Translations under genes and position numbers: made by a program
Notes under the pieces: generated by a model
What the model was told of the DNA's origin: nothing
The model's database searches: none
What the model saw: the letters and a program-made list of their open reading frames with translations, nothing else
Part shown: piece after piece, positions 1-22,120 of the stretch
Position numbering within the stretch: the first letter of the stretch is position 1
Layout: every line of letters starts with the position of its first letter
Origin: Klebsormidium nitens
Lineage: Eukaryota > Plantae > Klebsormidiophyceae
Direction of reading: 5' to 3'
Length of the DNA stretch: 64,000 nt
Assembly: GCA_000708835.1 (NCBI GenBank)
Contig: DF236962.1
Span: forward strand, 1 to 64,000

Positions 1-744
1 GTGTTGCCTTTAAAGTTGGACGTGTTCAGGCTAACAGAGGAGCTGACTGGAGCAACGGAGACAGCTCCAGTTAAGGTGGCCGGACAATCTGCAACCCAAC
101 AGCCTACGGAAGGTAAGCCTAAGGGAAAGTTCCCATAGTATTGTACTGGAATTCATGCATAAATGTTGATCGAACTTCAACATGAATATCCTGCGTCCAA
201 CCTTCCGGGTTGCTTCTACAGGTTCTTTGAGTTCTCGACCACGATACCCGTCAATCCAATCGACGGATGTTGCATCCATTGTCTTACCTAAGCAGACTGA
301 CTAACAGCACTTGCTTTATTTGATGGGGGCTTGAAAGCCTGAGAAGATGTAATCATATCCAAAGGACTTCAGAAAAGGAAAAAGGCCGCTATGGAATCTG
401 TTCTTTGTGATCTGTTCCAAGCCAAACAGCCTGTCCGGCCAAAAAACCCTGATGATTCTTTTTGCTTGTTTAAGTTGCTTTTAGTGCAAACAAAATACTT
501 TCGAAAGGCATGAGCACCTCAAGCCTCTGTCAGGCAGTTCCATATGGTTGGCCAATAGCCTGCAGCTGCTTCTATGATTATTGACAATTTTGCGTCTATT
601 GTCCAGCTCAAGGAAGCCCAAGGAAAGTCAGTGCAAGTGTGCCTCAACAAGTGTCCACTCGAAGTGAGGAAGGTAAGATTAGCCTATCCTTTCAGTCTGT
701 CGTCGTTGGTATTGATGACGTGACAGCGTCTGCAAGAACAAGCA

Positions 745-3700
745 ATGAAGGTGGCAGGATCTCCAATAACGAAGCAGAAAAAGGCACTTGTATCAGACTT
801 TAGCTCAATGGTTAGTAGTCGCACCTTTTATGACCATGCAGCTCTTCAAGAACAACAAGCTCAATCGTACCGTATGTTCCTTCATGTTTCAACAGGGCAG
901 CCCGCAGTTCTAAGGAACATCTTCGTCAAATTGCACACCGGCACAACCGTCTGCTTTTCAGCGTCCTCAAATCAGACCGTGCGGGAGCTCAAGCAGATTG
1001 TTGAGGAGAAAGGAGGTAATGAGCCTCACAGGACTTCTCGTTTGTCAATGTTCCAGACTTGCTGTCAAGTGCCTAGACATTGCCAGGATTGAATCGATCG
1101 GTAAGGTATTGCGTGTAGCTCCATACGCGCCGAGTGCGGCAGTCGGAATCTTGCGGCAGGACCCAGTCTATCTTTCAACCGCATATGCTCTATATGGATA
1201 GAGGGGCGATCCTTCGCTTCTCTTGAAACCCGCGCACTCTTCTACGACTTTCCATTTCCTGCAGGTCTGCCGTGCACAGCACCTCAGGTTCTCCGCATGG
1301 GACCCATCCTCCTGCGTGACGATTGGCTCCTTAGGGAACATGGGCTGGTGGACGGCATTTGCTTGGAAGAAAGTGTGCCGTTGTCTGGTGGCGCGCCTGA
1401 AGCAGGTATGGCATCTGTACCTCCCAACACATCTTACCCAAAGTTGTACACTTGCAACTCTGACCCTGTTTTGCGATGTTTAGATTGATGATCTCAGTGC
1501 ACACTGTATAGAAGAATTTGCCAACTTTGAAGCGGGTTCCAACGGCTTGGTCCTAATCCACTGCAGATCGGAATTCTGACTCTGATGGCGAGCCCCTAGC
1601 AACCTGGGTGAACAAAAAGACCAGGAACGAGAAGTCAAGTAAGTCACAGTACGCGCGGATGCTCTCTGCCGAGAGTGCATCCTCGCATTGGGCACAGCCC
1701 TCTCATGAACGGGCATTACTAGACCGGCTTCAAAGGGTCGATCTCTAAGAGTCTGCACACCTCTTCTTTCCACTGACCTTGAAACTTGCCGGACGATGCA
1801 GGACCAGCGGCGCCGGCTTCAAAAAAAGCAAGGACCGACAAGGGTTCTCACGTGCCCTCGAAGCCCAAACCGGGGGTTGCTGACGCAAGACACGCCCAGC
1901 CTCCCCAGGGTTCGTCAAGCAAGTCTTGCTAGATTCTGCAACTTCTTGAATAGTTGGATTGAAAGGCGTTCATGAGCGATTCATTTTGTGGCCTGTCGCT
2001 GTTGCACCCAAAGCTCTTGTTTACTGCATTGACCTACTTGACAGGGCTTCCAACGCAAGCTTGTCGCTTTTCCAAACCGCTGTGCTTCCTTTCAGCTCGA
2101 ACGGCTCGCACTGAAGCCCAAGGCCAAGGCTCTGAGCTACCTGTCCGACCCGAGCTTGGACGCGGCATGTACGAGACCAGAACCAGGACCTTTCCGCAAG
2201 GTACGACCTACTATCGAAAAACGTACTGATATTGTTGACTGCCAGCAAGCCGCTCATTTTCTGGGATGCTTAGATCCATGGATGCACATGCTCATTCAGG
2301 TCCGAGGACTCAGCTACCTTCAGTCCGATCAGAGATTGAATAGGGTGCGTACGAGATGGATCCGCCCACTGGACAAGGTGCACGCTGGCGCAGGGCGGCG
2401 CGAGATTTGCACTTGAGTCAGGCCAGTCGAGCGACCACTGGGGCCTCCTTCCTGGATTCCTGTGACTTCAAGCTTTCAGTAGATTCATGTGCTTGAGGAG
2501 TGCTCAAAGCCTGTTTCCGACCATCTTACAAACAGGCCGCTTGGCTTGCTTGCTGTGTGCAGATTCTCACAATCCTGCAATCAACTCCGCCGGGGCTAAG
2601 ATCTTCGACCCAGAATATGCCGACCAGCCAAAGTATTTCACGGACATCAACGGCGCTCCTGTCCAATTAGAAGACCTAGAAGCCTTTCTTTGCGGCGAGT
2701 CCAGTGAATGTCATGGAGACCTGGAAGACTGCGACGATGATGACCGTGTCTTTGGTGGCAGGTAATTGCGTCCGCCAATTGACGTAATAGGTCAACTGAG
2801 TCATCAGTGCACCAACGGTTTCCATCTGTAGTGGCACTTTCGCGCGGCTACTTCCCATTCCGAATGTTGTTTACCGGTGGGTGAGAGTTGCTTGCCCTCG
2901 GCTTCTCCGAGATCATTGTCTCTCTCACATGCCGCTACGTACCTTGTCCGTCTGGAAGCAACTCTTTCCGCTTGCAGATTAACTGCGGAACGCCGGAACG
3001 CAATCAATCAAAAACGACAAAATAGTCGGCCGAAGAATACACGCCGCTCTTACTATCCCAAGCTTAAGCACTTTGTGGTGAGTATTGGCTGCAACGGTGT
3101 GAAAAACTTCTTAGGTCGATCATCTGATTCGACTGGTGTTTCAAAGAGGCGTGTTGGACATCGCTGCTCAATGGGCTGCTCGCCAGCTACTCGGTCATCT
3201 GCTCGTCAACTGCTTGACCATTGACTGCTCGCCAAACCCTCGCCAACTGCTTTGGTGCTCATCACGCTCCTCGAGATGTTTCAATGCAGAAGTGGTGCCG
3301 GGAACACGGTCGGTGCATGCCAATACCATTTGCTGATCGGGCTGCTGCTTTCTTGTCGTGGCGGACGAGGAATACGATTGGCCAAGCTGAGAAGGTAACC
3401 ACTCTGCCAACTGTCTGCTTGCGCTTGTCGGCCGTTTGACCAATTTCTAGCCTCACTTTCCCCAAGTGAGTGTCGCTCGACGGGCCACATTCAATGAAGC
3501 ATGACGGCTGGCAGTACGTTGCACGAATCTGATCATTTTTGCCCTCTTGAGGTTGGCCGCGTACTCTGATTGATAAGTCTATGCGTGCTTCCAGATTGAG
3601 TCGAATGCTACCTTCGATATGAATCTTGCCGCTCTCACGGACGCCAAACGACGGCTAGAGGACAATTTCAACTGGGACTTGGGAACCCGCTTATGTGATT

Positions 3701-6700
3701 ACGGGATGATCAAGAATATTGGGGAGAACGTGCGGACAGATGCTGAGCGGGAGAGAGTGGAGTGAGCTGCCCTCCTCTTTTCTCCACTTCTCAGAGCTCT
3801 CTCGATGGTATTAAGTTGGACTAGTGTCTTCTCAAAGACAGCCAGAAAATTGTTGGCGATAAGCCAACGAGATCGTCGTTTCCTTTAGCTCCAGTGAGTG
3901 GAAGAGATAGAATGATGCTTATGCATCTTCATAGGTGTGTGAAAGCACTTGGAGCCGTGCATCAACTTGGAACAGAAATCTTCAAGGCGCCGTCTCAGTC
4001 GTCTTTTGTAGGATGGATCGAAGTTGGGTACTATGAGCTAGTAATTGCGCTTATCTTTTGGCAGGTCGCGCGAGGATCCTCAGCTTAACACTGGAGCCGA
4101 TGCTTTGACAAGAGAAGAATTTGAGAAGTGTTGCGGCTTTCTGGCAGAGAAGGCGAGAGACGAGGCTGCTCTAAGATACGGGTGAGGGCTACTCTGTCAG
4201 CTATGCTGTGTCTTTTCGCATAGGGAGCGCAGGCTGCTTGCAATGAATTTGGCAAGCAGTGAGGTGGTCGACGCAAGAAAATTGCGCGCGCTTGACAAAC
4301 TTGAAGGGTGACCTGTCAGCCTTGAGAGTGGGCTGAGCCGTTTAAGGTGAGCTCGATCTAGCAGGAGCCGATTGCTTTCTAATCTGCTTTCTAATCTGCT
4401 TATTTTTGGTGCAGATCAATGATGAAAGTAGCTCGCCAGGCCATCTTCAGAGGAGATGATCAGCGAGGCGTTCGAATTGCGGACATGTTTTTCCACGACA
4501 TCCCTCTGAAAGCCGTGGGACCAGATCCGTGTGCGTGTCTGTGCATCATCTCCAGGACGGGGAAAACGAACGTGGTAAGGAGCACAAGTCTGCTCTATGT
4601 CCTGTGCTCAAGCATAAGCTTTCCAAGTGGGTCAGACTCAATCCGCCACTTCAATGCTTCAGCCAGCTGGTCACCTTGATCAAATGAGTATTGGCTCCGG
4701 CTAAGCTTCCACGATCTGAAACGTATCGCATGCATCTTTTGTGCTCACATCATCTGCTTCTTTTTACCTTTTTGACAGCAACATAAAGTGGAATATGGAT
4801 TTATGTTCCGCGGGGAGGACTCCAACACTTGTGCCATCGGCGGTCTGGCAAGATATTTGTATCATCGATTCGTGGTGCAAGGAGAACAACCGTTGAAATT
4901 GGTGACTCCTGAGGGCGAACAGGATCCGGATTGGTGAGCAAAGGCGTCGAGTGTAACACCTCAGCATCCTTGCTTCTTGAAAGAGCTTTCTGTCCTTATT
5001 CTGTTGCTCCTTGTTGCTGAGCAGCAATCATTGAGTTCTGTTCGCTGCTTCAAAAGCTATTTGTCCCCGCACTCTGAACCAGTTCAGCTCTACGCGTGGT
5101 ACCGTTTGAGCCTGCTAAGCATCGTGGGGGATGCAAGGCCGATGTCAGACAGATAGTTAACGGAGCACTTCGACTTCCATCATAGAGAAACAATTGCATC
5201 ATCTTCGTCTTACAAATCTGAGTCTCTCTTGCAGGATTGATCGTCTTACTTGGCCGTCTAGTCATCCAAGCAAAACGCAACAGCTCAGCCCAGATGCTCA
5301 TAGCGCGTATGTGAAGGAGGTGTTCAAGAAGAACGAAGTAATCTGCTCAAAGGTCTTACATGCTTTCAGGCCCTCTGCCGCTTTAGAAGCTGCGGTTCAT
5401 GGGTAAGCTGCAGCCTGGGGCGAGCTCCAATCTCTCTGATTGTCTTCACAATGTTGTCTACCGTACCCTGCTAATTTACATGCTTGTAAGCACTTGAAAG
5501 GTATCTGATTAGTTCCCTGTCAGAATTGCGAATTACATGAGGCACGAAAATCGAGCACCTAACCAAAAACCTTCCAACTTATTGCAGGATTTCCTTCGAA
5601 AATATCATGCGAGCAGGTCGTTGGCACTACTCCCAGAATGAAGCCCTTGCTATGTCCTATCTGAGTAGCATTTGCTCCGACGTTGGGCTGGTTTTGGCCG
5701 GGTTTTCCAAGGACGCAAGCTGTCATATCCAACCTCGAAGCTGCTTAAACATAGAAAGAGACTTCCCCGCTTTGTGTGCCTTGGCAAAAAAACAATTGTG
5801 GCCGTGGGTGGAGGCCGAGGAGGAGAAGGTTCGGCAGGTAAGTCTAAAATGAATTTGGGAAATAGCTGTCAATTGAACGCTTCCATTCTACAAGTACACA
5901 TGTGCAAACAGAGGAAGAATCAGTCTAATGTTGCTTGCAAGACCTTCTGATGCGCAGTGGTCAAGAGCAATCTTTGATGGATGTTCGGCTTCGGATGAGA
6001 GGTTTCGAACGGTTAAACAAAAGTTCACTCGCAGTGTCTCTTTTTTTAAAGCAGCACAACAGTCAATGTCGCCCAAAGGACAGATGGGTCGCTGCTGCAA
6101 ACGTTTGCACCATGCTGAAGCGCATGCGGATCATACTGCTCGAAGATGCGGTTTTTCTTACGAACCTGGCTCCTTTCAGTCCGGTTTGTGGGGATCCGCT
6201 TTTCAAAAGGCAAGTCTGAATACTACCTCTCAGTGTGATCGCTGTACAATAGGCCAAGCTTATGATTGAAAACTGCTGGAGTCCTCTTCTCCTTGTGCAC
6301 CAATTTGTAGCTTCACTTGCGCACCAGGTTTGAAGTCTAAACATTAGCACAGAGCGGTGGGCTAGTAGGATGTTAGATGTTGCTGGGCTTTGAGCTTTTG
6401 GTAATCCGTCGTCTGGTGCAGTTCCGAATTTCTCGACTTTGCGGCCAAGCTACGGAACGCTGCTCCACTGCATAAGCAGAAAATGGAGGCGCAGCATTCA
6501 TCTCACACCGGGGTCATTGTGGGTCAGCTTGGAAATTCGATGGTAGGTACCTTGACACCTTTATACGAGTCAGCTAGTATTAGATGGTCAACTTCAACCA
6601 GGACTGAAGTACACCGTTTGAAGCTCGGTGTCCTCAGAAGGAAAGATTGAACTGAGTCAGTTCAGTCCTTCACGTTCATCACCCTCGGTTGCCTAAATTG

Positions 6701-8809
6701 ATTTCTGATTGAACGAGGCAGCTTGTTGCAGTGACTTCTCTACGTAGTGTTTGATCTAGTAGCGCTGTTGTGAGCCAATAGCAATGGAGAAGTGTGAGTT
6801 CAATGGTCTCATTCGGGCACATGTTTGGTTTAAAGGCTCAAGAGCAACAAACCTAGGTTCGAATTGGCAGTATCGAGATTTTCATGGCTCTGCTTTTACG
6901 AGAAGGTGCTGAATAATCCATGATCTCAACGGACTTCAAACATGAGTGAACCCCTATTTGCAGGAACTGGCGTTGGCTCGGCTGAGGGGCAGCCACACAA
7001 GCTTAATGAACGGCCTTCGAAGGCTGTTTAAATGCTTTCAGAATTCCGAAAGTCCTCCTTCAGCGGAAGAAGTTGCGAGTATTGCTCAGCAACAGCTTCA
7101 CGAAGATTTGAACTTTAGCCCATTCAAGACGCCCGAACTGAACCGACAACAGCGTGAGCAGGATTCTCGGCCCAGGAACTTGTTTCCCGATCCGTGCTCA
7201 GAGGAGTTGCGTAGACGCGAACTGACCGGAGCTGTCTCGAGGCTTGCGGAAGCGCAACAAGCAGCTCTAAACCTCTATCACTTGGCAGAGCGGCAGAGCG
7301 CGAGTACTGATCCCCTTGAGTCAGCAAAGGCCGCAGTCACTTTGCAACGGGCAAAGTTACAAGCAGGACTTGCTGACACTCTAGCAAAGAAGGTAGCTCT
7401 CCTTGAGAACTCCACCCCACTTCCCACCTCGACTTCCACCTTCATTCCATCGAGCGCCACGTCTCCCGCAAACCAGCCCTCATCTCAGCCCGCGCCTCAC
7501 GACAACTCGAGTGGTCTGCATTCCGCAGCTGCCGGGATCCACAGTTCTCATGCTTCCTCCCCCATACAGACCCCAACAGTGTTCACGGGAGAAGTTCCGG
7601 AGTCAGCGCCGAGGGGGCCGGAATCAGCCCCCGCTGCCAGGGCTGATGAACGAAGGTCCGACCCCGATCCAGTCAGGCCGGCACGCAAGCCTCAAGCGGC
7701 CCCGGCATCACGTAGAGGTGGCCTCGATGAGTGGGACACCTACCTTCTTCCTTCGAACGTATCTGTCTCAGGTGAATTGCAGCACTTACCTTCAACAGTA
7801 TTGGGAGCCAGGCGTTCACAGTCTGGAAAGAGCTTTGAGGAAGTTACCATCTCAGGTGCATCACAGCACCTACCGTCAAAACTAGTATTGGCAGCCAGGC
7901 TTCTACGGTTTGGAAAAGAGCTTTGATAGTGTTATGAAGATGCTCTCAAGTTGGGTGGAACTTTTTTTCGTTTTCGGTTAGAGGTTCTTGTTTGCACAAT
8001 CTAGATATTCAGACGACCAGTGAAGGGTTGCTACATGTCAGCAGGTTGTTTCTGATGAGCAGCATGTACAGAACATCGAAGCTTTTGGGAGGCAGTACAT
8101 CCGACTGGTCTACACATGCAGCTTCATGCTTCTTTACTTTTGCAGAGATCTGGCGCATCTTTCGAGAAGCTGGGCCAAACGGGAAGCCTTCAATTTTGCA
8201 ACTCATGGTGAGGTGTGGCAATCAGAATCTGTGGTACCACCAAGCCAACACGAAGGAAGGACAGAACAATCGCAAGCACCAGTGGCATGAGAAGTGAGTC
8301 CTACGGCAGTACCCCAAGATCTTTGCTTTAATCTGCTGGCGGTGCCGTTATGCTATCCTCTGTTGCTTTGTTTGCAGCAGCACCGAATGGCAATCCGCTT
8401 GAAAAAGCAGGTGGTACGTACGTGGGTGGCAGATCCAGGTTTGGTAAGGCTTTGCTTCCAATACACGAAATCTGGCCATAATTGCTTAGAGCTTCCCTGA
8501 GTATGATAATTGTGATTCTCTTGACGGTGCAGGTACAAGCCTATTCTGTGGGACATTCTTGCAGACATCACCGACCCCAAGAAACGGCTGACTGCAACGG
8601 CTTCAATTAAAAGACTTGAGGGAATCGAGCAGAAAAGAGAGCTTTCCACCGCTGCACTTGGCAAGTATCTAAATGGTATTTACAAAGATGCTGCAGGCAC
8701 CATAAAAGAATCTGGGAACAAGAAAGCACTTGAAAAGGCAGTCGCTGTGCAAGCTCGAAAAAGTCGAGCTGTGGCTTGGATAGACGATCAGATAAGCAGT
8801 GGACGTTGA
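745..8809 (+). CDS. Crypton-type tyrosine recombinase (NDC10-II/YR-like core plus C-terminal GCR1_C) with an in-frame N-terminal ubiquitin-like domain; ~1225 aa from position 745; probably 5'-incomplete
   Basis: Phase-consistent exon chain: 745-1015, 1265-1405, 1567-1638, 1802-1909, 2045-2200, 2563-2761, 2978-3077, 3290-3394, 3595-3761, 4065-4181, 4415-4574, 4779-4933, 5235-5402, 5588-5837, 6055-6209, 6422-6542, 6964-7771, 8146-8293, 8533-8809. It totals 3678 nt with no internal stop. Crypton-like motifs: RPKNTRRSYYPK..F-KWC; IFRGDDQR (catalytic R); GKTNV-QHKVEYG..R..D..C..GGLARYL..RF; SKVLHAFR (HxxR); RAGRW; AMSYL (Tyr); MRIILLEDAV..P.CGDPLF; SVSEIWRIFREAGPNGKPSILQL (GCR1_C-like). Further candidate exons lie at ~30-107 and ~600-672. 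Confidence 0.85.
919..1392 (+). other. Ubiquitin-like domain split over two exons (919-1015, 1265-1392), ending in Gly-Gly
   Basis: IFVKLHTGTTVCFSASSNQTVRELKQIVEEKG-GLPCTAPQVLRMGPILLRDDWLLREHGLVDGICLEESVPLSGG is 75 aa. It aligns by eye to ubiquitin IFVKTLTGKT...LRLRGG (74 aa from residue 3). Confidence 0.75.
7766..7926 (+). repeat. Diverged tandem duplication (~75 bp x2) that includes a 5' splice site
   Basis: 7766-7838 and 7850-7926 both begin TCTCAG|GTG and end AGAGCTTTGA. Confidence 0.8.
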
Positions 8810-9747
8810 TTTATAGCACGACAAACGCAAACGCTTCCAAAACCTATGCCTCGCCTTGGTTTCCTCTTTTCATGCATGTTTTCACTGACACCGCAACATA
8901 ATTGCATAGACCAACCATTTGACTTTTTGATTTCGGTTAAAGCAAGCTCGAAATATATGCAATGTAAAACCTGCGCTTATGCAGTGGAGCATGAACTGAA
9001 CATCGTTCAAGCCTGCGACCACATGCAGACATATCCAATCAGGTTCAATTGCGTGTATAAGAGCAACGGTTCGATCTTGTCCTCCATCATAGCCTGGCAA
9101 GAGCTTTAGCGCGCATGAATACATGTTGAATTAAGCTGGCTGCCTGAGACAACCAGATCAGTCAATCGAAGGTGAACTTACAACAAAGCAATTGATTACG
9201 CAATTGGGACCAGCTTAACTTCTAACATGTGGGACGAACTGCATGACCATGGTTCATCCGAATCATACTGTATCCGGTTGCATATATTTACGCTCGTATT
9301 GCACCTTCAATACGTCGAGCCATGAACGGTCTTGGGCTATCAATATCAAAGTATCATTCATGTATCTAGGGTTATGCACGCACACATTCACAATTCTGCC
9401 GTTCTGGTTGAGATAATCAATCAGATTATGTAACCTTCGAGTCAATTACCAGGATCAGCAGCATCATGGAAGTGCATACAATACTCGGCCGTGACAGATT
9501 CTGGTATATTTGGAAGGTTATAGAAAGAGCCCTCTTGTTCACCAGTGCGAAACGCAGCACCCGGCCAGTTCCTAAAGGCTTGAGTTTTGAAACCTTAGTC
9601 CCTGCAACGAGTCTGACTTTCCAAGCTGCGCAGTTGGTCCCTGAACGTTTGCACCAGCTGCCTGCTGTCATTGTGCTCAGTAATCCAACTCAGCAGAGAT
9701 CTTACAATATTTCACAATCTTGGAAAAGGGTCGACTGCTCACTTGTG

Positions 9748-9857
9748 ATCTGGATCACCACTGCCTTTGTTTTTTTTTTTTTGTTGGGAAAGACCGTCTA
9801 AGCACGTGCGGCTCATCGGTTGGAGCTCGCAGACTAGCATATCTGGATCACCACTGC
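9748..9857 (-). mobile_element. 5'-truncated non-LTR (LINE/SINE-type) retro-insertion of 76 bp with poly(A) tail and 17-bp target-site duplication
   Basis: ATCTGGATCACCACTGC occurs at 9748-9764 and 9841-9857. A T-rich run (poly(A) on the minus strand) directly follows the first copy. Confidence 0.7.
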
Positions 9858-11231
9858 GTTGACGGGGAATCACAGACAGCAATACTTGGTTTAGAAGTTT
9901 GCGAATTTTGAGGATCAGATTACGAATTCTGTTGAAACAGGCAGAACCTGGTAGCTAGATAAGTTGAGGAGTCGTAAACAGAGGCTTGTGACGTATATTG
10001 AGCTGTACAAGCTGCATCGATCAGCTTGAATGTTTGCAGCTGTACTCAGCAAGCTGCCAGTCACTCATGTGCTGGGTTAGATTCAAGACACTTTCTTTGA
10101 CGTTGAATTTCAATCTGGCTGCTTTTTTAGAGGGCGGGCCAAGGATCTAAGGTGGAAGCTCAAACGAGTGAACGAGTTACAAATAAAAGCTCACCAGGCC
10201 AACCAAGCGGGCCTTCGGCAGCTTTGGTTATGGAAGGCAGGACGAGACCCGGACGAGACCGCTTTCTGGATCTTGAAGCTTGAATTGTGAGTAAATATCA
10301 GCCTTTGAGCTGGTCAAGCTACGTCAATTCACCATCAGCTCTCCCAGCTACTGCATTCTGCAATATACTAGCTGCTAGCACTCAAAGTTCTTTTCACATT
10401 TTCAAGTGACCGAGTAAATTGCAGGTGTGACATTGCGAAGCACAATGCTGACGGAAGGCAGGCTTGATTTGCTGCTTTTCAAGCCTTTTCTAAGCTTAAC
10501 TATCTGTGCTGATGTACAAGATAGGCGACTGCTCGTACTGAAGTACCATCCTTGTCCAGCAACGAATGGCACTGCGGCAGCTGAGCTACCAGCTGCAAGC
10601 TAGCAACTAGGCTTGGCGGTTGCGATGATGCAACTGCAACTGGAGGCTTCCGAGTCCCGACACCTAATACGAAGTTCGAACTTCTCAAACTTTGAGAGAA
10701 TCGGGTTAAATTCTGAGGTTAGTGACGATTGGTCTCCTCTGCATATGGGGGGTGAAGCGAAATAACGAATATGCATAATAGATTGGCCGTCCGATGATGG
10801 TCATCGGACGGTGTGAAGGTCAGAATCCTGCGGTAGCCGCCCGACGGTGGAGCCTCCGCGGAGTTACCGTCCTCCGGAGCCGTCCTCCGGGCGAGGCCTA
10901 CCGTCCGCGCGCCCAGGATAACCATGATTCACCCACCTCGGTGCGATCAGGCGCGAAAGCGGTAGCTGGCAAAGCAGAGACTGAACGTGTTGCAGGGCGC
11001 TCAGGCAAGCTCCCTCGCTTGGCTACATCAGGTCAGGATGGGCGTCTTCTCCTTCTGAAGTGCACACACAATGCTGGCAGCAAATGCCGGAGGTCACTTC
11101 ACAATTCCGTAGTGAGGCCGCAGCAGTCTGTCATGCAGATAACTGCTGGCACCTTGAAACGAAGAGAGCGACGCTTGCTTGAAACTTGAGCGCTGCAAGG
11201 GGTAGGGCCCAGCTCCGCAGGACTTAGCAGC

Positions 11232-14200
11232 ATGGAAGACATGGAGCCCTCAAAGATTTTAGAGAAAATTGTCTTGCAGATCACAAACGGAGGCGCTGAG
11301 TGAGTTTAGCAAAGCTTGGAATCTCTCACAATGCTGTCAGCTGAGAATGCTCGTCGACTTGAGTTCTCAAATTTGTAGGTTGGAAGATGGGTTTGACAGC
11401 CGGTCTTTGTGAATATTTTGTTGTTTGTCAAAGAGTGCGGAATGTGCTTCTTCTGACAAAACTTACCCGTGTCGCCCACATTGTCATATGGTATAGATAT
11501 ACTTGAGTGAGAGCACCACAGTTGTACATTCGCTCTTCAGGAACTCTAAAGCAATATCAGGTGCCACCTTTCTGCTCAGATGTTCAGAGTTTGAAGATCT
11601 TGCTCCATCCTAGTATGGCCTTCCAGATTACGGTGCAGACTCATGTCTCAAGACAGAAAATGGACCAAAGAGGCAACTTTTATTTTTTGAAGAAGGTCTG
11701 ACTTATGGGCAAAAAATCATATCAGGAATTCTGCTGTCACAAGCATGTTTTTACTCTGGTCAAGTCTTCGAGTTCTGTCATTTTCTTGATGCCAAGAAGC
11801 GAATCTTACAGCATTTCTTGGCTTATTAGCAGCTCATGAGCCATCAGATCTAGGGTGAATTTTTTCTATGGGCGTCCTTTTCTGCAAACACTCAACCTTG
11901 GCGCAGACCCCTTCCAGTAAACTTCCACATTGTTCAATGTTATTCTTGTTGAACATTCTGATCTTGGGCATCCTGCCCTCACATGTGTCAAGAGACCTCC
12001 AAACAAATGGCCAGGCTTGGCAGAGGGTGAAACAAAATTTTGGCGTCCAACCCTCCGTCTCACCAGACTGTTCTTGAAAACCAGCCTGCAAGTTTGCTTT
12101 TCCCGCCTGTCTGTCTTGACACCGCACCACCCTTGCAGGTGCGAGATCTACTTGGTGGCAGGCACCGCCAGGCACCGTGTGTCAACCGGGCCACTTGCGC
12201 CCCTGCTGGACCAGCTTGACGCCGTCCGAGAGCAGTACTCTTCGGACGCGTCCGAGATTGTGTTGCAGCCACACGCATCCACAGATGACGTGGGGCCGAG
12301 CCCTAGCGGTGGCTGGAAGGTCTTCAAGCGGAGCAAGTCAAAGGGGAAGAAGGGCAAGAGGGCGAGCACTGGGGGAGAAGAGCCTCCAGCCTGGTTCACT
12401 CGAGAGACTGCCGAGAAGTGAGTGCGGGCTTGGCAAGGGTAATGTGGTGTCTTTTTGAGCTTTGCTGAAACCTTAGTTGCGCAGAGGCCCATTGTGCGTC
12501 TGACTCTGAATTGCTCACGTGAAGTGTCTACCTGCACACAAAGAGCACTTTTCGAGACGCTTCTGGATGGTATCTCAGGTTGAAGGCCTTCGAACTTTGG
12601 CTTCCTTTTTGACAGAAAGTCAAGTGAACTACCCTAACCACCTTCAGGGATGGTTTGGGCAAGTTGAGTGAAAGTAAAGTGACAACAGGCACAGGGTTCT
12701 CCTCACTGATCGTTATGGTAAACGCTGACGCTGTTTGCTATCTGCTATGGGAAAAGTTGCAATCGTCGGCAGCTTAAGTCCATTGCCAAGGGACGGGTAA
12801 ATTCTGATGTCAAAATGCCAACATTTTTATTCTTGACCTCCAGCATAGAAGTGCCGCTCAGAAAAGTAGCATGATGGCCTAACGAGTTTCTGAGTGCTGC
12901 TGCACTTGCCCCCACGGAGTCACTGCCAAGGATGTGGAACCAGGCTTAACTTGTGGACAAGACACTCTGCTTTCTTGCTTAAGACACATTTCCTCTCCAA
13001 CGCTTGTGGATTCTACTTCAGAAACTCAGAAAAGGCCTTTTTCCCCTCCTAATCCCCTTAGGACCTCTTCAAATACTGGGTAGTATGTTGGTCAATGTTG
13101 CTTTACAAGACCTGGTTCCTTCATAATGCTTTTCCGTCCAGACTTTCATCCCACAGATCTGTCAAAATCCGACTAGGGGCTTTCAGGCATAAGTGGAAAA
13201 GGAGACGCATTCAGTCAAAAAGTGTCCATCTTTCCGCAGAGCGTTCCACCTGCTCTCCTCTTTGGAGCTGCTCGAACTGCCGGCCCGCCTGGCGCGAGAC
13301 CTCGAGAAGGTGCATGAGAAAGAGAAGGTGGCGCAGCCGTACCAGCGCGCCAGCCTGGAGACGAGCCGGATGACGCTGCAGCGCGAGTTTGCCAAGGCCA
13401 TGCTGGTGGCCAACTGCGCGGGGTACAAAGCAGAGGACATGGGCCCCGTCAAGAGCTTTGCAGAGGCTTTCAAGGGGAGGAGGCTTGGGTAAGGGGGGCA
13501 CTTTGAGGTGCTCTGTGAGAAAATTTTAGTGACTCCAGAATGTCGATGTGGAGTACATTGTCGCCAGATCTCATCTTCAGATTCAGAATTTTGTTGATAG
13601 CTGAAGTACTGCTCGTGCACAAGGACAAGCCCCCTCCAAAGATCTGACCTCACGGTTTTGGATAGCTTCACGAAGGTTGCCAAGGTCTGACTTTCCACAT
13701 TGTGATGCATCTTCTTTTAAACCAGGACTGCAAGCCCAGCAGCCTGACGATGAATCCTTTCTGCTCCGCAGGGTTGCATGTCAGGCCTTTGAAACGGCTT
13801 GCAGTGCGGCCTTAAGCCGGCTCCCTCCTCAAGCCGCGAAGCAGGTCGCTGCCCCTCCCGCAAGCTGGCCCGCCAACCAGATCCCAGTGATCGAGGCTGA
13901 CGCCTTTGACGACGACAGCGAAGCCCCAGCCGAACCTCAGCAGAGCGTCGGTGAAGTGCAGACACCTACAAAGGTGGAAACAAGAGAAGCGGGCACTGAT
14001 GCAGAAACTGCTGTGGACTCGGGTGTTGCCACTGAGGGGCAGCAGGGTGCGGCGGATGACCTGGTAGATCGTGTTGGGGGAACAAGCAAGGAGAAGAAGG
14101 GGGAGCTAGGGGCGGGCAAACCTGCAGCTGCGGTGGCCAGCAACGGATATCACGGTGTGGAGGGGAAAATGCCCAAGGCTGAGGGGGCAGCACTGGCTAA

Positions 14201-17200
14201 AGCTGTGGAGAACGCAAAAGAAGCCCCTGCAGAAGTTGAGCAAAAGACCCCTGATGCGAAGGAAGCACCGCAGCCGTCAAGTGCGGCGGGCTTGACTTCC
14301 AATGCCCCCGCAAGCAAACGCCCGCAGGAAGTTCTGAGCGCTCCGGATCCTGACACCCCTGAAAAGGGTTCCGCTTCCGATGGCCCCGACCAAGCGCTGC
14401 CCGCCCAGGAGACGCCTGCCAAAGACGGCCCTGCAAAAGCTCCCTTAGCGGCTGCAAAGGACGAGTTTCCAGCTCCGGAGTCACAACCCACTGAGCTTAG
14501 GCAGAACGAAGTGCCCAGCGAAGCCCCGGGTTCAGTCGCCGTCGATGCAGGCTTGCGCGAGATCGAGCCAACTCCAGACCCCTCGTCCCCGGTACTGCGC
14601 GGCAAGCCCGCGCATACCGGAAGCCCCCTCTCCTGGTCGGACGAAGACGAGATGAAGCTGGCGCGGCACAGCTACGGGTCGCAGGGCTTGGCGGGCATTG
14701 GGGCGGCGCCCTTGCACAGCGCAGAGGAACCAGGGGCGTTTGAAAGCGAGGATCTGCCCCTCAGCGCGGCTGCGGGCTCCCAGCCAGTTGACAGCCCATC
14801 TGGAGCGGAGGGGCCTGGGGGGGTCGGAAGAGCGGGGGAGGTGGTGAAGGAGCGGCATTCTGACGAAGCGGCAGAGCCGGAAACGGCTGATGAGGGTAAA
14901 GGGCAGCCGGCAGAGCTTGCGAAGGAGCCCGTCGGGGCGGGGCAAGTTGACGATGAAGGGACAGTACCTAAGGGTAGAGCAAAGGGGGAGCCAGGCAGCG
15001 AGGCGGCCGCTGGAGTAGCGCCCGTGAAGGTGGGGACGTCGCCTGCGCCCAAGGATATCGACGAGCTGTGGCGAATTACAAAGGAGAGGCTCTTCACCCT
15101 TCCCCCTCGGGAGAACATTGTTGAGCACGGTGTTGCTGCCAAGGAGAGAGACCAAGAGGTGGCCTGCGACGTTGCAGAAGCGGGCTCGTCTGAGCACACT
15201 CGCAAGGGCGCAGTATCAGAGACTGGTGCAAGCAGGGGCAGTGAAGCAGCGTCGAACGTTTCGGTGGCTGGGTCGTCGAGGGAGTTGACGAAGATCGGAA
15301 GCGACTCTGGGATGCAGGGAGTGGCGGTGTCCGCCCTAGCGGGCAAGGCCCCTTCTGAGGAAACCGTGGCAGCAGGCTACGGCTCGCGGCTCGCGGCTAC
15401 GGCTGGTAAGTTCCACTTCGGAATCAAGTCGTTCCAAGCGAGGCCCATAAAATTCGGAGTGGGTATGTTGGGAGCATCCCACAAAGTTGGACTTGTGGAT
15501 ATCTGTAGGTAGCCTTTGTGCTTTCAGGCGTTAGAATCGAGGTGTCCTGTCTCGAATTCGGATGTGTTCAAGAGAGCGCTTGTAGACTCAGATGCCGACG
15601 ATTCAATCTGGAAAAAGGGGTGTGCCAGAGGATCGAATGTCCTTGGAAATGCTGTGAGCACTCTGTGTTGTGCCGACCGGAAAAATGAAGAATGTGTTGC
15701 ATTACGGTCTGGTGCCGTATGTGTGGGTCAAAGTCACTGGATGTGAGAAGGACCCACCATACTTGCTCCTCAGATCTTTTGACAGTCTCTTCAATTTCGT
15801 TATCATAGTCGGACGTTTCTAAAGGCTCATCATGCGCTGCTGCTTTGCAGGCGTCCTTTCCGCCACTGCGCTGGCAGCGGAAGGGCAGCGCTTGTCTCAG
15901 CCCCATGAACCCCGTGAAGAAGGCACCGGGCACACAGGCACACCCGTCGACGCTGAGATTGCTCCTCGGGGCGCCTCAACAGCGGTTCCGGAAGGAACAA
16001 ACGGACCGAAAGGCGAGTCAGCGCCCAAGGATGACGCCACGGTGCCAGACACAGCCCCACCGGTCTTAATAAAGGAGAGCGGTGCACCGGCGTCGGAGGG
16101 CGTCGAAACCAGCTTGGCACAGGCGGTCGCTTCCCTTCCCTTTAAAGAGCTGCCGAAGGGAGGAGAGGCTCAGTTGGACGATGGAAGGCGTTCAGTCCCT
16201 GGTGCCAGCACCGACACTCTCCGGGCGTCCGAAGACCCTTCGGACACAGGCCCGATTCCGGTCCTTGAGCAGGGGTCCGAACCAAAGCAGCTAGGCAATG
16301 ACAGCGGTGAGGTGGTCGAGAAAGAGAACACCACGGAGGAAGCCTTCGAAACGCACTCCGACTCCTTGCAGTCTGCCGCTCCCGCTGCCCTGAGTCCGCA
16401 CCCTCCAATTCTTCCCAAAGCGCGCAGCTACGACAAGCCATGGCTGAGCCACTCGGTTCTGCCCGCATCACGGTCGCCCAATGAGGGAGCGCCAGCTGGC
16501 GAGGCGCACGGCCCGAGCAAAGCGGACGCAGGAGCGAAAGACACTGAGCAGCGGGCGTCGGAGGGGCGCGCGCGTCGGGACTCGATGGCGAGCTACAAGG
16601 AGCGGAGGCAGGCCAAGATGAAGGAGCAGGAGGAGCGGATCCGGGGCGAGCATGAGGCGAAACTCAAGGTGAGACTCAGAGGGCAAGGCGGAGGAATACA
16701 TGGAAAAGGCCGACAGGCTTAGGCCGTTCAATTCCTAGTCACATGGAGCTGAAAGCCAACTCAAGGTGACGGCGAAAGGACAAACCTTGAGAGGGCTTAA
16801 CTGAGGCCAAGTTTTTTGTTTTCTCTTTCTGCCGGACTTTTTTCAGTGTTCGTGAGTTATTAGCCGAGCCGACGATCTCCTGTCCGAAGGGGGGGTGAGC
16901 TTTACGAAGTTCGTACGTTTCGAGAATACCAATCCAGAGCATAGGTCCTGAATACTACTTATCTCTCAACATGTGCAGACAATTCGGGGACTGCTTTGGG
17001 AACAAAGTTCGAGATCTTATATTGAATAATAGACATGCTGGGGCCTGGGACGAAGTAAGGACGACGGATTGTAAGGAGATCCATCATTTTCGTATGACCA
17101 CGGTTTTGCAGCCGGGCAATTACCCCACATGTTAGGAGGACTTCCCCTCGAATCGCCTGACTTTAGCAGCAGAGCATGGGGCATTGTCCCGCCCGCTCTT

Positions 17201-20200
17201 GGAAGGCAACTGATCCACCTGCGATACTTTGCAAGCATCTAGAAACGACAAGCGATGGTTTCAATAAGACCCAACCCAACCCAGCAGCAGTCGGTTCTTG
17301 TCTATTCCAAACTCTGTTGGCAAGAAAGTGCGCTAAGCGATTCAAAGGGTGCAAGGTGAACAGTCGGATCATATACTGAACTCAGATCATGAGCACTTTT
17401 CGGACGCAGGCGCTGGAGGACGCTCTCGAGAAGCGGAAGGCCGAGATGGCCGAGCGCAGCCGGCGGTCCGCGCTCCTGTCCGCCACCGCAGCAGACCGGA
17501 GGGCCGCAATGGACGGCACCACAGCAGCGCCGGCAGCACCAGAAGACACCACAGAAGAGGTGAGACAGCGGAATATTGGTCTACGCCCTTAGTTTGAATC
17601 TTGCGAACGCGCTAAGAGGGTGACCTTGAGAGGTGCTGTTCTGCTCTTAGGAGGGCCTAGCTCGCTTACTTTGAGAGCTTAATTTCCAGGAGGCGCTCGG
17701 TCAGTCAGCCACAAGAAGCTGGCTCAACACTTTTGCTCCGGTATTGTGAGAAGAAAGGTTAGAGGTCGGCGTTCCTTTGGAACACTCTGCTTAGTGTCTG
17801 CTCGAGGAGCCTCTCTTTAAGCCCGTTCGCTGCTTTTGAGATGGACAGGAAAAGAATGAGCAAAGTAGAAGTTACAAGAATGTATGCAGCAAATCTGCAT
17901 CTCAAAGTGTAAGCAGTCACATATACATCTTTTTAAATAGCGCAGTGTTCTCAATGCACTCTCTGTTACTTACGACCTCATCGCTGTGCAGCCTTGGGAA
18001 ATCAGAGGGTAGATTTACGATTTTGTGCAACTTCGCAATGGATTGACCTTCGGCGTGCAGGCCAAGGAGCGCGCGCGCGAGCGCCTGCGCAAGTACCGCG
18101 AGGACAAGGGGCTGGCCTCCGCCGAGGCGTCCCCCCCTGTGGGCAGCCGGGTCAACCAGCTGCTGGCCAAGCTGGGGGTCATGGTCGGGAACAGCCCAAC
18201 CGGGCAGTCGAAAACCGGCCCCTCGGCAGCACAAAAGCTTCCCGACGGGAAGAAGTCGGTCGACGGCACACGCGGGAGCTCCATGGAGAGGAGCCAAGAA
18301 GGGCGGAGCCCGTCTATGCCGAAACCCCGAGGGCAGCAGAGCCCCCGGGGGACTTCACCGGGCGCGAGGAACGAGGGGGCAAGCTCCCGGTCAACAAGCG
18401 CTCCTCGCAGGCGCAGCTCCAGCGGACCGCCAGATGGCACGACGGGCGGCCAGACCGCCGCCGACATTCTGAGCCGGTCCATCTCCCCTGGTCGAGCGTC
18501 CATTGTGCGGTCGCCGCAGGCCTCGTCGAGAGGGCCGTCGCCGGCTCGCGCTGCGGCTTCTGTTCTTGGGCCGGGCCAAGCGTCCCCGGGCAGGGCCTCC
18601 CTTGCCAACACTCCCAAATCCGCCGCCTCTCCTTATCCGTCTCCTAGAGGACCCCTCTCAGGCCGGACTTCTCCGAAACCAGGGGGGTGGAACAAGCCTG
18701 CAAACACACCCCCGGCCAAGGTTTCCACGGCAGCGGCCCAAACCACCCCCCGGGCTTGGAACCGGGCGACTTCGGCGCCTCAGGTAGGGGGTCCCCCGTC
18801 GCAGCGAAAAGCACCCCCCCAAGCACCTTCGCCGGGGACGTTCGGACGGACCTCCCGGTCGACATCGTCGGGCACGTTCGGAACTGGCCCCCGGTCTAGC
18901 TCCTTTGGCGCAGCTCCCCGGTTGTCTTCCCCGGGCACTTTTGGTAGGGCTTCCCGCCCAGCCTCTGCGGGGGCGGTAAAGAGCAGCCCGGCAGCGCCGA
19001 AGTTCGTACGGCCCACGAGCGCGTCTGCTGTCGAAAGGAAAGTCGAAGTGCTTCCAGAGGACTCCACGACCGATGGTGGGCGCATTGGGGCGAAGAATGG
19101 GTCGAGCGCGAGGGGCGTCTTCCAGCCCAGGGGACCGTCGAGCGGTTCTCCCTCCACGTCCAGACCGCAAGGTAAGAGTTCTCAAGGGAATTGCTGCTCG
19201 ATACCTGGGTTGTTGCAAGTTTCGTCATCGTCACAGTGGCCTGCTCATCCCGCCCACGCTGGAGATTGTTGGAAGGGCGCTGAGGCCTCTTCAAGTTGTG
19301 GGAGTTGTCCTCTTTGTCTGTAGTCCGGCAGCTGTGATTTCTAATTCTAACTAGGATGACCGGATTGACTCGCTACTTGTAGATAAGGAAATTACGATAT
19401 GGCTAAGACAGACCCAGTCTTTCACTCTATGAAGGTCCACCCTTTACATTCTGTCACGGTGAGTTCGAATTAGCTTTGCCACGTTTCCATCTAAGGTTTA
19501 GATCCCGCTTTCAATTCGAGGCATCAGACCTAGAACCACAACCGCCAGCGACCGCACATCCCTCCGAAACCGGCGCCATTGCAAAGAACCAGCTTCCATG
19601 CTTCAAAAGTCCTCCTTCACTCTGCAGACATCAAACTCCCTCTCTCGTTCTCCCCAGACGGAACCAAGCCCGCCTGGTCCTCCGGCCTGCGCGTCACCGT
19701 CACCGACTCCAATCCCCGCCCCCGCGACCGGTTCGGCAACCGCACCGCACTCCCCCCGACGCCCCACCGGCCCGAACCGAGGCGCTCGCTATCTGCTGCG
19801 GGACCCCCCAGGCGAACGTCGCTTCCAGGAAGCACCCGCAGCGCGTCGACGACGGGGATCAAGCCGGCGCCGGCGAAAGCGGCCGAGGGCTTCAAGAGAG
19901 CGTTCGGTCCAGGTTAGCAACTAACTGCAGACAAGGTATAAACGGTTTAGCCCGGGCTCATCTAGTTTGCGCCCCCGGTGGGCTTGCTACTATGTAAATG
20001 GCGAATGATCCTCTTGTCGAGAAGGTGCATGAAGGGTCTAGAAACACGGCACCACAGATCAGTGGGTTGAGCGGAGACAGCGCAAGCTACTCCCCGTGTC
20101 CAGCAGTCAACCGCTCGGACTTGACTCGACTGCCATTCTGCGACCGATGCTATGCCCGTTAGAACCAGTTCTACTGCTCCGTCGGAATCTGGTTTCGCTC

Positions 20201-21341
20201 GGTGTTATAACCGGCCGCTTCTGGTCACGCAGGCGGGTCGAACCCTTCGACTCCGAGTAGTCAGCCGGCGAATCGCCTCCGGCGAGGCCGCCACAGCATT
20301 GCGGCCGTGCCTTCGGCTCCCAGTCCGGTAGCCACCCCCAGGCGGTCCAGCGGGGGCTTCGGGGCATCGAACACTGCTCGGGAACCCGTAAAGGTTCCCG
20401 CCAACCCAGGGACTCCAGGGTCTGCCCCAAGAACTTCTAGCTATCTCATGTCGGCCAAGGACCGGCTACTCAGCCAGACCAAGGCGTCGCAGGCCAAGCT
20501 GGCCGAGAGGACTACTGCGGCCGTCCAAGATCCGCCGAGCAAGCGGCGGGAGCGGAAGAGCGTCGCCGGAACGGGGCAGGCAGCGTTGGGCGAAAGGAGC
20601 ACCCCGGTTGTTCGCCCTGCAAGGAGAGCGTCTGCCGGAGAAGCGTACCCCCAGGTTGAGACAGATGTGGATAACGCAAGCGTGGAAACCGTGCGAAGCA
20701 CGGGGTCGGTCGCGGGGGGGAGCTTCCCAGCGAGTCCCTTGGTGCACCAGAAAGCCCCGGGTGAAATTCTTGAGACACCGGTGGCGCCGCAAGCGAGCGA
20801 GATTGCGGTGGAGCGGAGCATGGAAGACGCTGGGGTGGAGATGAGGCGGTTGAAAGGGGGGGCGTTGGAGCGGAGCTTGGACAGCGTCGAGCAGTTGTTC
20901 GGGGAGGAGATCGTGCTGGGCGAGGAGGACGGAACGGAAGACGAGCGGAACAAGGCGGAAGCGTTCGCCCGGCAACAGAAGCTGCTGGGGCTGCTGCAGG
21001 CGCGGCAGCAGAGCCCACTTACCGACAACTTGGGGGACATTCGAACGGAGCAAAATTCTGTTGAAAGGAACGGTAACGGCCGGCTCGGAGATGCAAGACA
21101 TGGGCAAATGGCGGAGTCAACTGAGTCTATGTTTGGAACCAAGGGGGAAGGCGGGGGTAGCGATGTTGAGTTCGGCGCTTCCCCCCCGACCAAGATAAGG
21201 AAGCGGTGGGAGGAACCGGTGGAGCCCCTGGTGATGCAGAAGAGCCCGGGGGACAGCGGCGGCACGCTTGGCAAGCTGGGGAAGCTGTTCTCTAGGAAGT
21301 CGAGCAAAGGAGCAGAGGGGGATGCAAGCCCGCTCAAGTGA
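11232..21341 (+). CDS. COP1-interacting protein (CIP7)-like protein with a long low-complexity Ala/Pro/Ser/Glu-rich region
   Basis: Exons 11232-11299, 12139-12417, 13240-13488, 13772-15405, 15851-16668, 17386-17559, 18061-19171, 19628-19912, 20233-21341. The N-terminus (ECEIYLVAG..STGPLAPLLDQL..WFTRET; CAGYKAEDMGPVKSFAEAFKGRRLGVACQAF) resembles the plant CIP7 N-terminal region. The C-terminus has LGKLGKLFSRK. Confidence 0.75.
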
Positions 21342-22120
21342 TGAACCGCGGCGCGGATGCTGGAGAGGGGACCTGTTGTGTTGGGTCGCAAACAGGGGTT
21401 GACGAGGTCATCTCATGGCTTCGTAGATCATAATACTCGCGCAGGCTCTGATGCATTGTCACGCAGATGAATTTTCTCAGTACAGATTGATTATTACTAG
21501 TACAGATTTATTGGTGCAAGTAGTTGGTTGTCGATCTGATTTGGAGTGATTATGATAATTCAGCGAGCTCTGAGGAGCTCTGAGCATCATAGGAACACGC
21601 GTCGTCCTCACTCCGGCCAAGTTATGTAGGCTTAAGTCCAGGCTCGAAGTTCTAGGCTCGCTTATCTGGCTGCATGCGCCACAGCAGAGATGACATTATA
21701 AAACATAAGCAGGGTAAGCATCTGAATAGTTGCGTGCAATGAATAAGTTGGGGCGTGTGAATTTTATGTCGGCATGACCTGCATCGACTACGTTTTGGTC
21801 GAGTCTCATGCCAACTTAGGTACAGTTTTCAAAGTCCTGACAACAAGCTCCCTCAACTCACATCCAACATGTATTTGAGACTGCATGGTTAGTCCATATC
21901 CATGGTGGTGCACAAGAATCATCGTACGTTGTGAATAATAAAGGGAAAGAAGCCATGTGCAAGACTGGAGCTTCGAAGCCCGTCATGAATGCTATTAGTA
22001 TGCCGGCGACAACTCGTCATGCGCTCACGTGCACTGTTGAATGCCTTGAAATTCCAATATCGAAGGCCGACAAACCGGCCTGAATACGATTAACAAGCTC
22101 GCAGTCAGAATCCCGTAATC

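Follow-up and report, generated by a model that had tools for sequence, protein, structure and literature searches.

A ubiquitin-like domain spliced in frame to a Crypton tyrosine recombinase in the alga Klebsormidium nitens

To our knowledge, no class of eukaryotic DNA transposons is less well understood than the Cryptons, whose mode of expression is essentially unknown. They are already documented in the green lineage, where CryptonF-1_cRei is active in Chlamydomonas reinhardtii (PMC9977147). The locus described here lies in the first 64,000 nucleotides of contig DF236962.1 of Klebsormidium nitens (hereafter, the window). Like the CryptonF-type elements of fungi, oomycetes and C. reinhardtii, it encodes a tyrosine recombinase with the full R-K-HxxR-W-Y set, whose catalytic domain is probably of the NDC10_II type, and it appears to belong to a multicopy family with decayed members. 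It differs in that exons for a ubiquitin-family domain are spliced in frame ahead of those for the recombinase, in a gene of at least 21 exons without a Pfam match to GCR1_C. Close analogs of this arrangement are the natural ubiquitin-fusion precursors, namely polyubiquitin, the ubiquitin–ribosomal protein fusions and FUBI-eS30, in which a ubiquitin-fold domain likewise ends in Gly-Gly and is followed by a protein with a first residue other than proline. Unlike those precursors, the ubiquitin-like domain (UBL) found here ends in VPLSGG rather than LRLRGG, does not keep the Ile44 patch and is internal, with at least 66 residues encoded upstream, while its cargo is a transposon recombinase and its cleavage is putative. 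The N-terminal 2A (StopGo) peptides of retrotransposon ORFs also sit just ahead of the element's enzyme, with the same presumed job of separating it from upstream translated sequence; here, however, separation would be post-translational and performed by host proteases, and no NPGP of the 2A motif D(V/I)ExNPGP occurs in any frame of positions 1–8809 or of the related copies L001–L003. A link between DNA transposons and the ubiquitin system is likewise known from elements that carry ubiquitin-system proteases, such as OTU in Ginger2 and Helitrons and Ulp1 in Mutator-like elements (PMC2836005), but those elements encode the protease, whereas the present one carries a ubiquitin-like substrate module. 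Our literature searches found no description of a UBL–Crypton or UBL–transposase fusion.

RNA contigs from three studies revealed a UBL–tyrosine recombinase fusion mRNA with a continuous ORF, in which the UBL exons are joined to three linker exons and these to the recombinase exons, always in frame (Table 1). The contigs are short assemblies, and the UBL-to-recombinase chain was built from overlapping contigs, whose joints fully connect the exon at 607 to the exon ending at 6209. In particular, record 11 of run X7 joins 1353–1401, 1563–1638, 1802–1908, 2095–2198 and 2561–2607, bridging UBL exon 4 to exon 8, while record 2 of X1 and record 7 of X2 bridge exon 7 to exons 9 and 10; the joint between exons 7 and 8 was present in four runs (X1, X2, X7 and X5) from the three studies. 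Five of the six introns proposed by the sequence-only reading were recovered exactly (1016–1264, 1406–1566, 1639–1801, 2201–2562 and 2762–2977). The remaining one, proposed at 1910–2044, spans 1910–2095 in the RNA, which keeps the frame and removes 17 residues. Eight further introns are also supported by RNA and extend the chain to exon 6055–6209. The coding frame of the RNA-defined mRNA contains no stop in 376 codons, whereas the other two frames contain 10 and 19, and the full model (1217 aa) stays open from base 1 until it stops at 8807–8809. At least seven short 5' exons have lengths that are all multiples of 3 nt and junctions that are all in phase 1; exons 5–7 (72, 108 and 105 nt) supply 95 linker codons without a stop, and frame and phase are preserved at all seven junctions.

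Of the 24 listed runs, few contained transcripts, and contigs with retained introns occur among these. RNA depth was alike on the UBL and recombinase exons and zero on 2201–2560. These data make it very improbable that the locus comprises two separate genes, with the UBL gene ending alone and the recombinase transcribed from a promoter near 2500–2900. Such a division could draw on the in-frame ATG at 2487 and on a contig retaining intron 6 (1880–2124), which would stop a UBL-only protein at 1932, but it is contradicted by the joints 1405>1567, 1909>2096, 2200>2563 and 2761>2978 in several runs. Moreover, the contigs contain no 1405>1483 joint of the kind expected from a separate UBL transcript, and the stretch devoid of RNA is the one where the recombinase promoter would lie.

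Table 1. Features of the fusion gene (window coordinates).
Feature	Positions	Strand	Evidence
Exon 1, partial; gene continues upstream of the window	1–112	+	X1/X2 loose ends, frame analysis
Exon 2, disordered leader, phase 1-1	607–672	+	Joint 670>894 GT..AG in X1, X2; loose end at 605
Intron 2, contains ATG 745	673–895	+	Joint skipping 673–895 in X1, X2
Exon 3, first UBL half from 916 (NIFVKLHTG...)	896–1015	+	RNA joints; Pfam ubiquitin match
Exon 4, second UBL half with Gly141-Gly142, then APEA	1265–1405	+	Joints 1013>1263, 1401>1563; PF00240 29.3 bits
Exon 5, acidic and basic linker	1567–1638	+	X7 record 11
Exon 6, basic linker, NLS-like KKARTDK at 1822 (by inspection)	1802–1909	+	RNA joints
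Exon 7, linker, contains Met231	2096–2200	+	Joint 1908>2095 in all four runs
Intron 7, fusion intron	2201–2562	+	Joint 2198>2561 in X1, X2, X7, X5; zero depth 2201–2560
Exon 8, first with homology to other Crypton copies, from 2595 (AKIFDPEY...)	2563–2761	+	tblastn, BLASTP vs L002/L003
Exon 9	2978–3077	+	RNA joints; homology to L002
Exon 10	3290–3394	+	Joint 3076>3289 in X2; loose end in X1
Exon 11	3595–3761	+	RNA; ORFs P0019–P0021 70–72% identical
Exon 12	4065–4181	+	Joint 3761>4065
Exon 13, Arg491 (GVRIAD, 4473–4475), Lys521 (TGKTN, 4563–4565)	4415–4574	+	RNA joints; inspection
Exon 14, NDC10_II positions 83–131	4779–4933	+	Pfam E 0.008; RNA joints
Exon 15, His618-x-x-Arg621 (HAFR, 5359–5370)	5235–5402	+	RNA joints; P0006 spans region
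Exon 16, GRW (Trp644), nucleophile Tyr656 (MSYL, 5658–5660)	5588–5837	+	14-sequence alignment
Exon 17, NDC10_II 274–312, then GC-AG intron	6055–6209	+	Pfam; joint 5833>6051; loose end 6209 reading 6422 onward
Exon 18	6422–6542	+	RNA loose end; homology to L001 and L004
Exon 19, long low-complexity region, alternative donor 7856	6964–7771	+	Homology to L004, L007 up to residue 1076
84-bp tandem duplication, doubles exon-19 donor site	7766–7926	+	TRF: period 84, 1.9 copies, 82% matches
Exon 20, GCR1_C-like motif by eye only	8146–8293	+	Homology to L002, L004, L007
Exon 21, stop at 8807–8809	8533–8809	+	Sole acceptor in frame with donor 8294; same junction in L002, L004

Both ends of the gene differ from the model originally drawn at 745–8809, of which the fusion itself is upheld at the RNA level. 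The ATG at 745, taken as the start codon, lies inside an intron that contigs of X1 and X2 skip, and the real 5' exons comprise one ending at 112 followed by 607–672 and 896–1015. The UBL, initially placed at the N-terminus, is therefore internal, with further coding sequence upstream that reaches beyond the window. Within the window, the coding frame is open to base 1 with no ATG before the UBL, and the X1 and X2 loose ends before 605 carry 158–211 nt more of upstream sequence, reading window positions 81–110; from these two observations, we infer that the start codon of the fusion gene lies outside the window. The exon-1 peptide (...LKLDVFRLTEE) resembles, by eye, the last strand of another UBL. 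At the 3' end, the gene closes with two exons, 8146–8293 and 8533–8809.

The UBL, described earlier as ending in LSGG followed by APEA, was found at 916–1015 plus 1265–1392, with a spliced length of 76 residues. A search for a ubiquitin fold returned a significant family match, as the spliced domain exceeded the curated threshold of the Pfam ubiquitin family (PF00240; 29.3 bits, cut-off 25.4, E 7.2e-7, profile positions 1–62 of 72). The stretch 745–1014 alone matched profile positions 1–31 (E 5.6e-4), with the matched residues within exon 3. Alignment to ubiquitin covered residues 2–76 with z = 12 against 2000 shuffles and superimposed Gly141-Gly142 (1387–1392) on G75-G76, the next residue being Ala143 and thus not proline. 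In this alignment, Leu73 is kept, while Arg72 is replaced by Pro, Arg74 by Ser and Ile44 by Arg, so that recognition by common deubiquitinases is uncertain. Many UBL-domain proteins stay unprocessed, and the divergence of the tail and hydrophobic patch from ubiquitin would suit a UBL that remains attached and regulates the recombinase, whether the Crypton is active or has given rise to a domesticated host gene; such a domain might direct the recombinase to proteasomal degradation, as in instability of the ubiquitin-fusion-degradation type, or dock on ubiquitin-binding partners. Integral UBL domains, however, usually lose the C-terminal Gly-Gly, which is retained here exactly at the ubiquitin end position, and we consider an uncleaved UBL improbable.

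The Crypton tyrosine recombinase, described as intact in the sequence-only reading, is catalytically complete, with R491, K521, H618/R621, W644 and Y656 all placed in the spliced model; the roles of R491 and K521 were assigned by inspection from established tyrosine-recombinase motifs. Across a 14-sequence alignment, the Tyr was invariant and the Arg and Trp nearly so. Partial, collinear matches to NDC10_II (PF16787) were identified in exon 14 (E 0.008) and exon 17 (E 0.033), and the relative P0006 matched positions 154–266 (E 5.4e-6; 26.1 bits against a cut-off of 26.3). Similarly, for exon 16, the nearest named Atlas clusters with a Pfam family are NDC10_II, with scores of 0.96 and 0.94 at ranks 2 and 3. 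A candidate exon at 3935–4027 is unused, as the joint 3761>4065 skips past it. The GCR1_C domain attributed to the C-terminus was not recovered: exon 20, exon 21 and their spliced 80–82 residues gave no Pfam match to PF12550 at E up to 10, and the Atlas offered no support for GCR1_C in this region. What remains of the C-terminal GCR1_C that characterizes the CryptonF subgroup is here a resemblance by eye.

Diverged copies with the same exon structure were identified in other assemblies (L001, L002/L003 and L004–L007), and intron positions are deeply conserved among the Crypton copies. Compared with L001, identity is 46% at third codon positions and 88% in the protein, a difference that indicates purifying selection. 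Strong purifying selection and conserved introns would also fit the host-gene form of an uncleaved UBL fusion, but a transposon better fits a multicopy family with a decayed member (the L002/L003 copy is frameshifted and lies among Gypsy elements) and with two different copies, L005 and L007, within one run; the restriction of expression to few runs also weighs against an uncleaved UBL. No repeats marking the Crypton termini or target site were found in the window.

The origin of the fusion centers on intron 7. Crypton homology begins 11 codons past the acceptor at 2563, and the element may have its left end within this intron. The ATG at 2487 within the intron is in frame with exon 8 (ORF 2487–2765) and may once have served as the element's own start. 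Among the relatives, a 5' end could be read only for the L002/L003 copy; there, an ATG of its own precedes the conserved region by 22 residues, and the roughly 16 kb farther upstream, which are filled with Gypsy insertions, contain no UBL. Met231 in exon 7 precedes the Crypton homology by the same 22 residues and could act as the start of a UBL-less protein. Apart from Met231, these features are as expected of an accidental host–transposon chimera, in which a (multi-)UBL gene of the host would supply the UBL exons, a Crypton would have inserted just downstream or in an intron with its left end inside 2201–2486, and the host transcript would splice into a cryptic acceptor at 2563, the in-frame fusion being tolerated or recent and devoid of an evolved processing function. 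The likeness of the exon-1 peptide to the tail of a further UBL points in the same direction. We regard such a chimera as a serious possibility, albeit one that we would sooner doubt than accept: at 2200, the contigs continue only to exon 8, with no other joint or loose end toward downstream host exons, the reading frame runs unbroken over the seven junctions and the linker, GC3 does not separate exons 1–7 (0.56) from exons 8–21 (0.54), and the window yielded no host paralogue of these UBL exons.

Our preferred reading, to which we give not quite an even chance, is that the locus is a single transcription unit working as a ubiquitin-fusion precursor, from which the UBL is cleaved from the Crypton recombinase after Gly-Gly. 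Its 5' exons encode a disordered leader, then a ubiquitin-family domain that retains its C-terminal Gly-Gly, and finally a linker that is basic and NLS-like; they are spliced in frame to an intron-rich and catalytically complete recombinase. Since the mature mRNA leaves the recombinase without its own start codon at the usual place, the enzyme would be translated as the C-terminal portion of a fusion with the UBL. Host deubiquitinases would then cut after Gly142, releasing a 1075-residue recombinase that starts with Ala, retains the basic linker and is rid of the upstream-encoded part, an arrangement that may serve the element. By extension, and as an unlikely generalization, Klebsormidium Cryptons may be natural gene traps. 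Lacking a reliable promoter or start codon of its own, the element would rely for its expression on upstream exons that are spliced to an acceptor right where its coding region begins, and the recombinase would then be freed by a release module, here the ubiquitin-like Gly-Gly domain cut by host deubiquitinases. If true, a DNA transposon would here use polyprotein processing as RNA viruses do.

An expressed recombinase that is translatable only as the tail of a UBL fusion possibly represents a new way of borrowing host transcription and host proteases; alternatively, it may be a clean case, found in nature, of a host gene that has captured a transposon. Either possibility can be put to the test in this alga, which grows in culture and for which RNA data already exist. 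Should cleavage take place, the UBL module would join the 2A peptides as a natural release device, and the dosage of the transposase would be tied to the ubiquitin system.

Contigs of the four RNA runs X1, X2, X7 and X5 (three studies) were placed on positions 401-6400 of the window and revealed 15 GT..AG joints, outlining a plus-strand, intron-rich gene of eukaryotic type. Of the six introns that the sequence-only reading had drawn between the ubiquitin-like domain (UBL) and the recombinase, five were reproduced exactly by RNA joints, while the fourth runs to 2095 and not to 2044, a change that shortens the product by 17 amino acids and keeps the frame. One contig (X7 record 11) spans 1353-1401, 1563-1638, 1802-1908, 2095-2198 and 2561-2607, and two others (X1 record 2 and X2 record 7) span 2095-2198, 2561-2757 and 2974-3077 and continue into exon 10; since these contigs overlap, UBL exon 4 is chained to the recombinase exons. 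That a fusion mRNA joins UBL and recombinase in frame is well supported, and we hold this view with high confidence, the RNA support consisting of short assembled contigs as opposed to single molecules. Sampled words from 745-4200 were found in each of four runs of one 2024 study, at a share (33-38%) close to the expectation for spliced exons alone, which make up ~44% of this stretch; three other listed runs contained ~6% of these words, and most remaining runs contained nearly none. The RNA runs are labelled with two organism names and are identical in sequence.

Introns and Crypton relatives identified in this analysis
Feature	Position or source	Strand	Support or remark
Intron	1016-1264	+	RNA contig joint, as proposed
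Intron	1406-1566	+	RNA contig joint, as proposed
Intron	1639-1801	+	RNA contig joint, as proposed
Intron	1910-2095	+	RNA contig joint
Intron	2201-2562	+	RNA contig joint, as proposed
Intron	2762-2977	+	RNA contig joint, as proposed
Intron	3078-3289	+	RNA contig joint
Intron	3395-3594	+	RNA contig joint
Intron	3762-4064	+	RNA contig joint
Intron	4182-4414	+	RNA contig joint
Intron	4575-4778	+	RNA contig joint
Intron	4934-5234	+	RNA contig joint
Intron	5403-5587	+	RNA contig joint
Intron	5838-6054	+	RNA contig joint
GC-AG intron	6210-6421	+	GCAAGT...CAG; RNA loose end at 6209 resumes at 6422
Relative L001	NCBI assembly		88% identity in exon 16
Relatives L002/L003	JGI metagenomes 3300060285 and 3300060284		Crypton relic 6754-13500
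Relatives L004-L007	Logan assemblies, three runs		two different copies in one run

The scenario of two separate genes, with the recombinase transcribed from its own promoter near 2500-2900, was checked against the same RNA contigs and was not seen: they contain no joint from 1405 to 1483, and their coverage of 2201-2560 is zero. As the RNA joints contradict two genes, we regard this scenario as very improbable. Among the unspliced forms, an X1 contig (1880-2124) keeps the intron after 1909 at a depth similar to that of the spliced form, and in this read-through the ORF ends at 1930-1932, which would give a UBL-only protein with no recombinase. A further X1 contig (3069-3392) retains intron 9, and an X2 contig lies within intron 3 (1043-1248). 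A guessed exon at 3935-4027 is unused, the RNA connecting 3761 to 4065.

At the 5' end, an RNA joint skips 673-895, and ATG 745, from which translation had been proposed to start, is therefore intronic. The contigs extend to 605 and then carry 158-211 more letters, which open with positions 81-110 of the window and thus define an exon ending at 112. Across the exons ending at 112 and spanning 607-672 and 896-1015, the frame is open to base 1 with no Met ahead of the UBL; because the loose ends exceed 112 nt, the gene begins beyond the window edge, which makes the UBL internal. In the coding frame no stop interrupts the first 376 spliced codons, vs 10 and 19 stops in the other two frames, and every one of exons 2-7 has a length that is a multiple of 3 nt (phase 1-1). 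By eye, the peptide of exon 1 (1-112), ending in LPLKLDVFRLTEELTG, is similar to the C-terminal part of ubiquitin, strand plus tail (LHLVLRLRGG), minus the Gly-Gly. Judged by this likeness, exon 1 (LKLDVFRLTEE) may supply the last strand of a second UBL encoded upstream, beyond the window.

The presence of the UBL itself was borne out, as its spliced 76 residues reach 29.3 bits on the Pfam ubiquitin profile (E 7e-7; gathering score 25.4), and its first half alone matches the same profile (E 5.6e-4). Local alignment to ubiquitin runs from residue 2 through Gly76 with one gap (z = 12, 2000 shuffles). The predicted Gly-Gly followed by Ala is likewise in place (Gly141-Gly142 of the spliced model, at 1387-1392), within the tail VPLSGG, and an Arg aligns with ubiquitin Ile44. 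This UBL is a diverged family member that retains a processing-type end.

Downstream, exon 14 aligns with positions 83-131 (E 0.008) and exon 17 with positions 274-312 (E 0.033) of the Pfam recombinase domain NDC10_II, and a relative protein ORF in which exons 15-16 are fused without an intron (P0006) covers positions 154-266 (E 5.4e-6). Of the named clusters in the Atlas, the nearest with any Pfam assignment have NDC10_II, ranking 2 and 3 with scores of 0.96 and 0.94. The catalytic set R491, K521, H618/R621, W644 and Y656 was placed by the motifs GVRIAD, TGKTN, HAFR, GRW and MSYL, respectively. Searched as a profile against the PDB, the alignment of exon 16 gave nothing meaningful.

For the 3' end, the model rests on homology. 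Donor 8294 has a sole frame-keeping canonical junction, to 8533, which is shared by the relatives L002 and L004, and the full model, with its stop at 8807-8809, encodes 1217 aa in 21 exons. A candidate exon at 8378-8446 ('HRMAIRLKK') was rejected, having no canonical junction in frame; L002 and L004 splice exon 20 straight to the last exon. The GCR1_C domain that had been claimed for the C-terminus gave no Pfam match, whether single exons or the spliced region was scanned, and the element is therefore not filed as CryptonF on the GCR1_C criterion. A tandem duplication of 84 bp at 7766-7926 (1.9 copies, 82% matches) copies the exon-19 donor site; either donor (7772 or 7856) keeps the phase, and the two products would differ by 28 aa.

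Among possible relatives, an exhaustive representative search with exon 16 returned short ORF fragments only. When the word index was queried with the ORF of exon 8 and with exons 11 and 19, it gave nothing, or fragments from two other samples only. The contigs of the fragments recovered by these searches display the same exon structure as the window copy. Exact look-up of the window ORFs matched no record, and of the 224 pattern matches that the alignment of recombinase exons produced in a metagenome scan, none was confirmed. Identity to L001 is 86% at first, 93% at second and only 46% at third codon positions, a pattern that indicates old divergence under purifying selection, a statement that is qualitative only, as synonymous sites are saturated for dN/dS. 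One run (Logan SRR14092358) contains two different Crypton copies, L005 and L007, with ~70% identity to that of the window, and their sequences show the family to be multicopy there.

The L002/L003 copy is frameshifted, lies among nested Gypsy elements and has the same exon structure. Its homology to the window begins at 2595, which lies 11 codons inside exon 8, and its own ATG (L002:6754) stands 22 aa ahead of the conserved region (TKIL). No UBL was found upstream of this copy, even in 10 kb more (L008), where only nested Gypsy elements occur (one LTR pair at L008:11374-11807 and 16521-16954, 95% identical); because these retrotransposons occupy the region, the absence is a weak negative. In the window, intron 7 contains an ATG at 2487 whose frame, read through 2562, continues into exon 8; this ATG may be the former own start of the element. 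The main rival explanation is an accidental chimera, in which a Crypton was inserted behind a host UBL gene, and we consider it plausible, if somewhat doubtful. CryptonF-1_cRei is active in Chlamydomonas and favours 5' UTRs and gene-proximal sites (PMC9977147). GC3 does not differ between the UBL and Crypton exons, and the linker exons are strictly in phase.

Met231 (2167-2169, exon 7) precedes the conserved AKIF by 22 aa, a spacing that matches the own ATG of L002. A 2A motif is absent from the gene (1-8809), and the proposal of LLCADSHNPAI as a 'degenerate 2A relic' is unsupported, the stretch before AKIF not aligning with L002. NPGP tetrapeptides elsewhere in the window, in stop-bounded frames at 45041 (+) and 52052 (-), are probably due to chance. 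Downstream of the Crypton, the stretch 12000-22000 is G+C-rich (55-63%), with long low-complexity plus-strand ORFs, one of which (13677-15512) has 611 aa and a GC3 of 0.61-0.66; this stretch is a host-like neighbour gene.

Some transposons are known to bear proteases of the OTU or Ulp1 type (PMC2836005); a fusion of a UBL to a Crypton or another transposase did not turn up in our literature search. We judge it rather unlikely that the UBL remains uncut in a regulatory role or that the gene is a domesticated one. Our favoured working explanation, held tentatively and at a little under even confidence, is a ubiquitin-fusion precursor, since the Gly-Gly is preserved with Ala next, the linker keeps its phase, and the observed RNA shows no other recombinase start. 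A cut after Gly142 would free a 1075-aa recombinase that retains the basic linker and begins with the neo-N-terminus APEADRNSDSDGEPLATWVNK.
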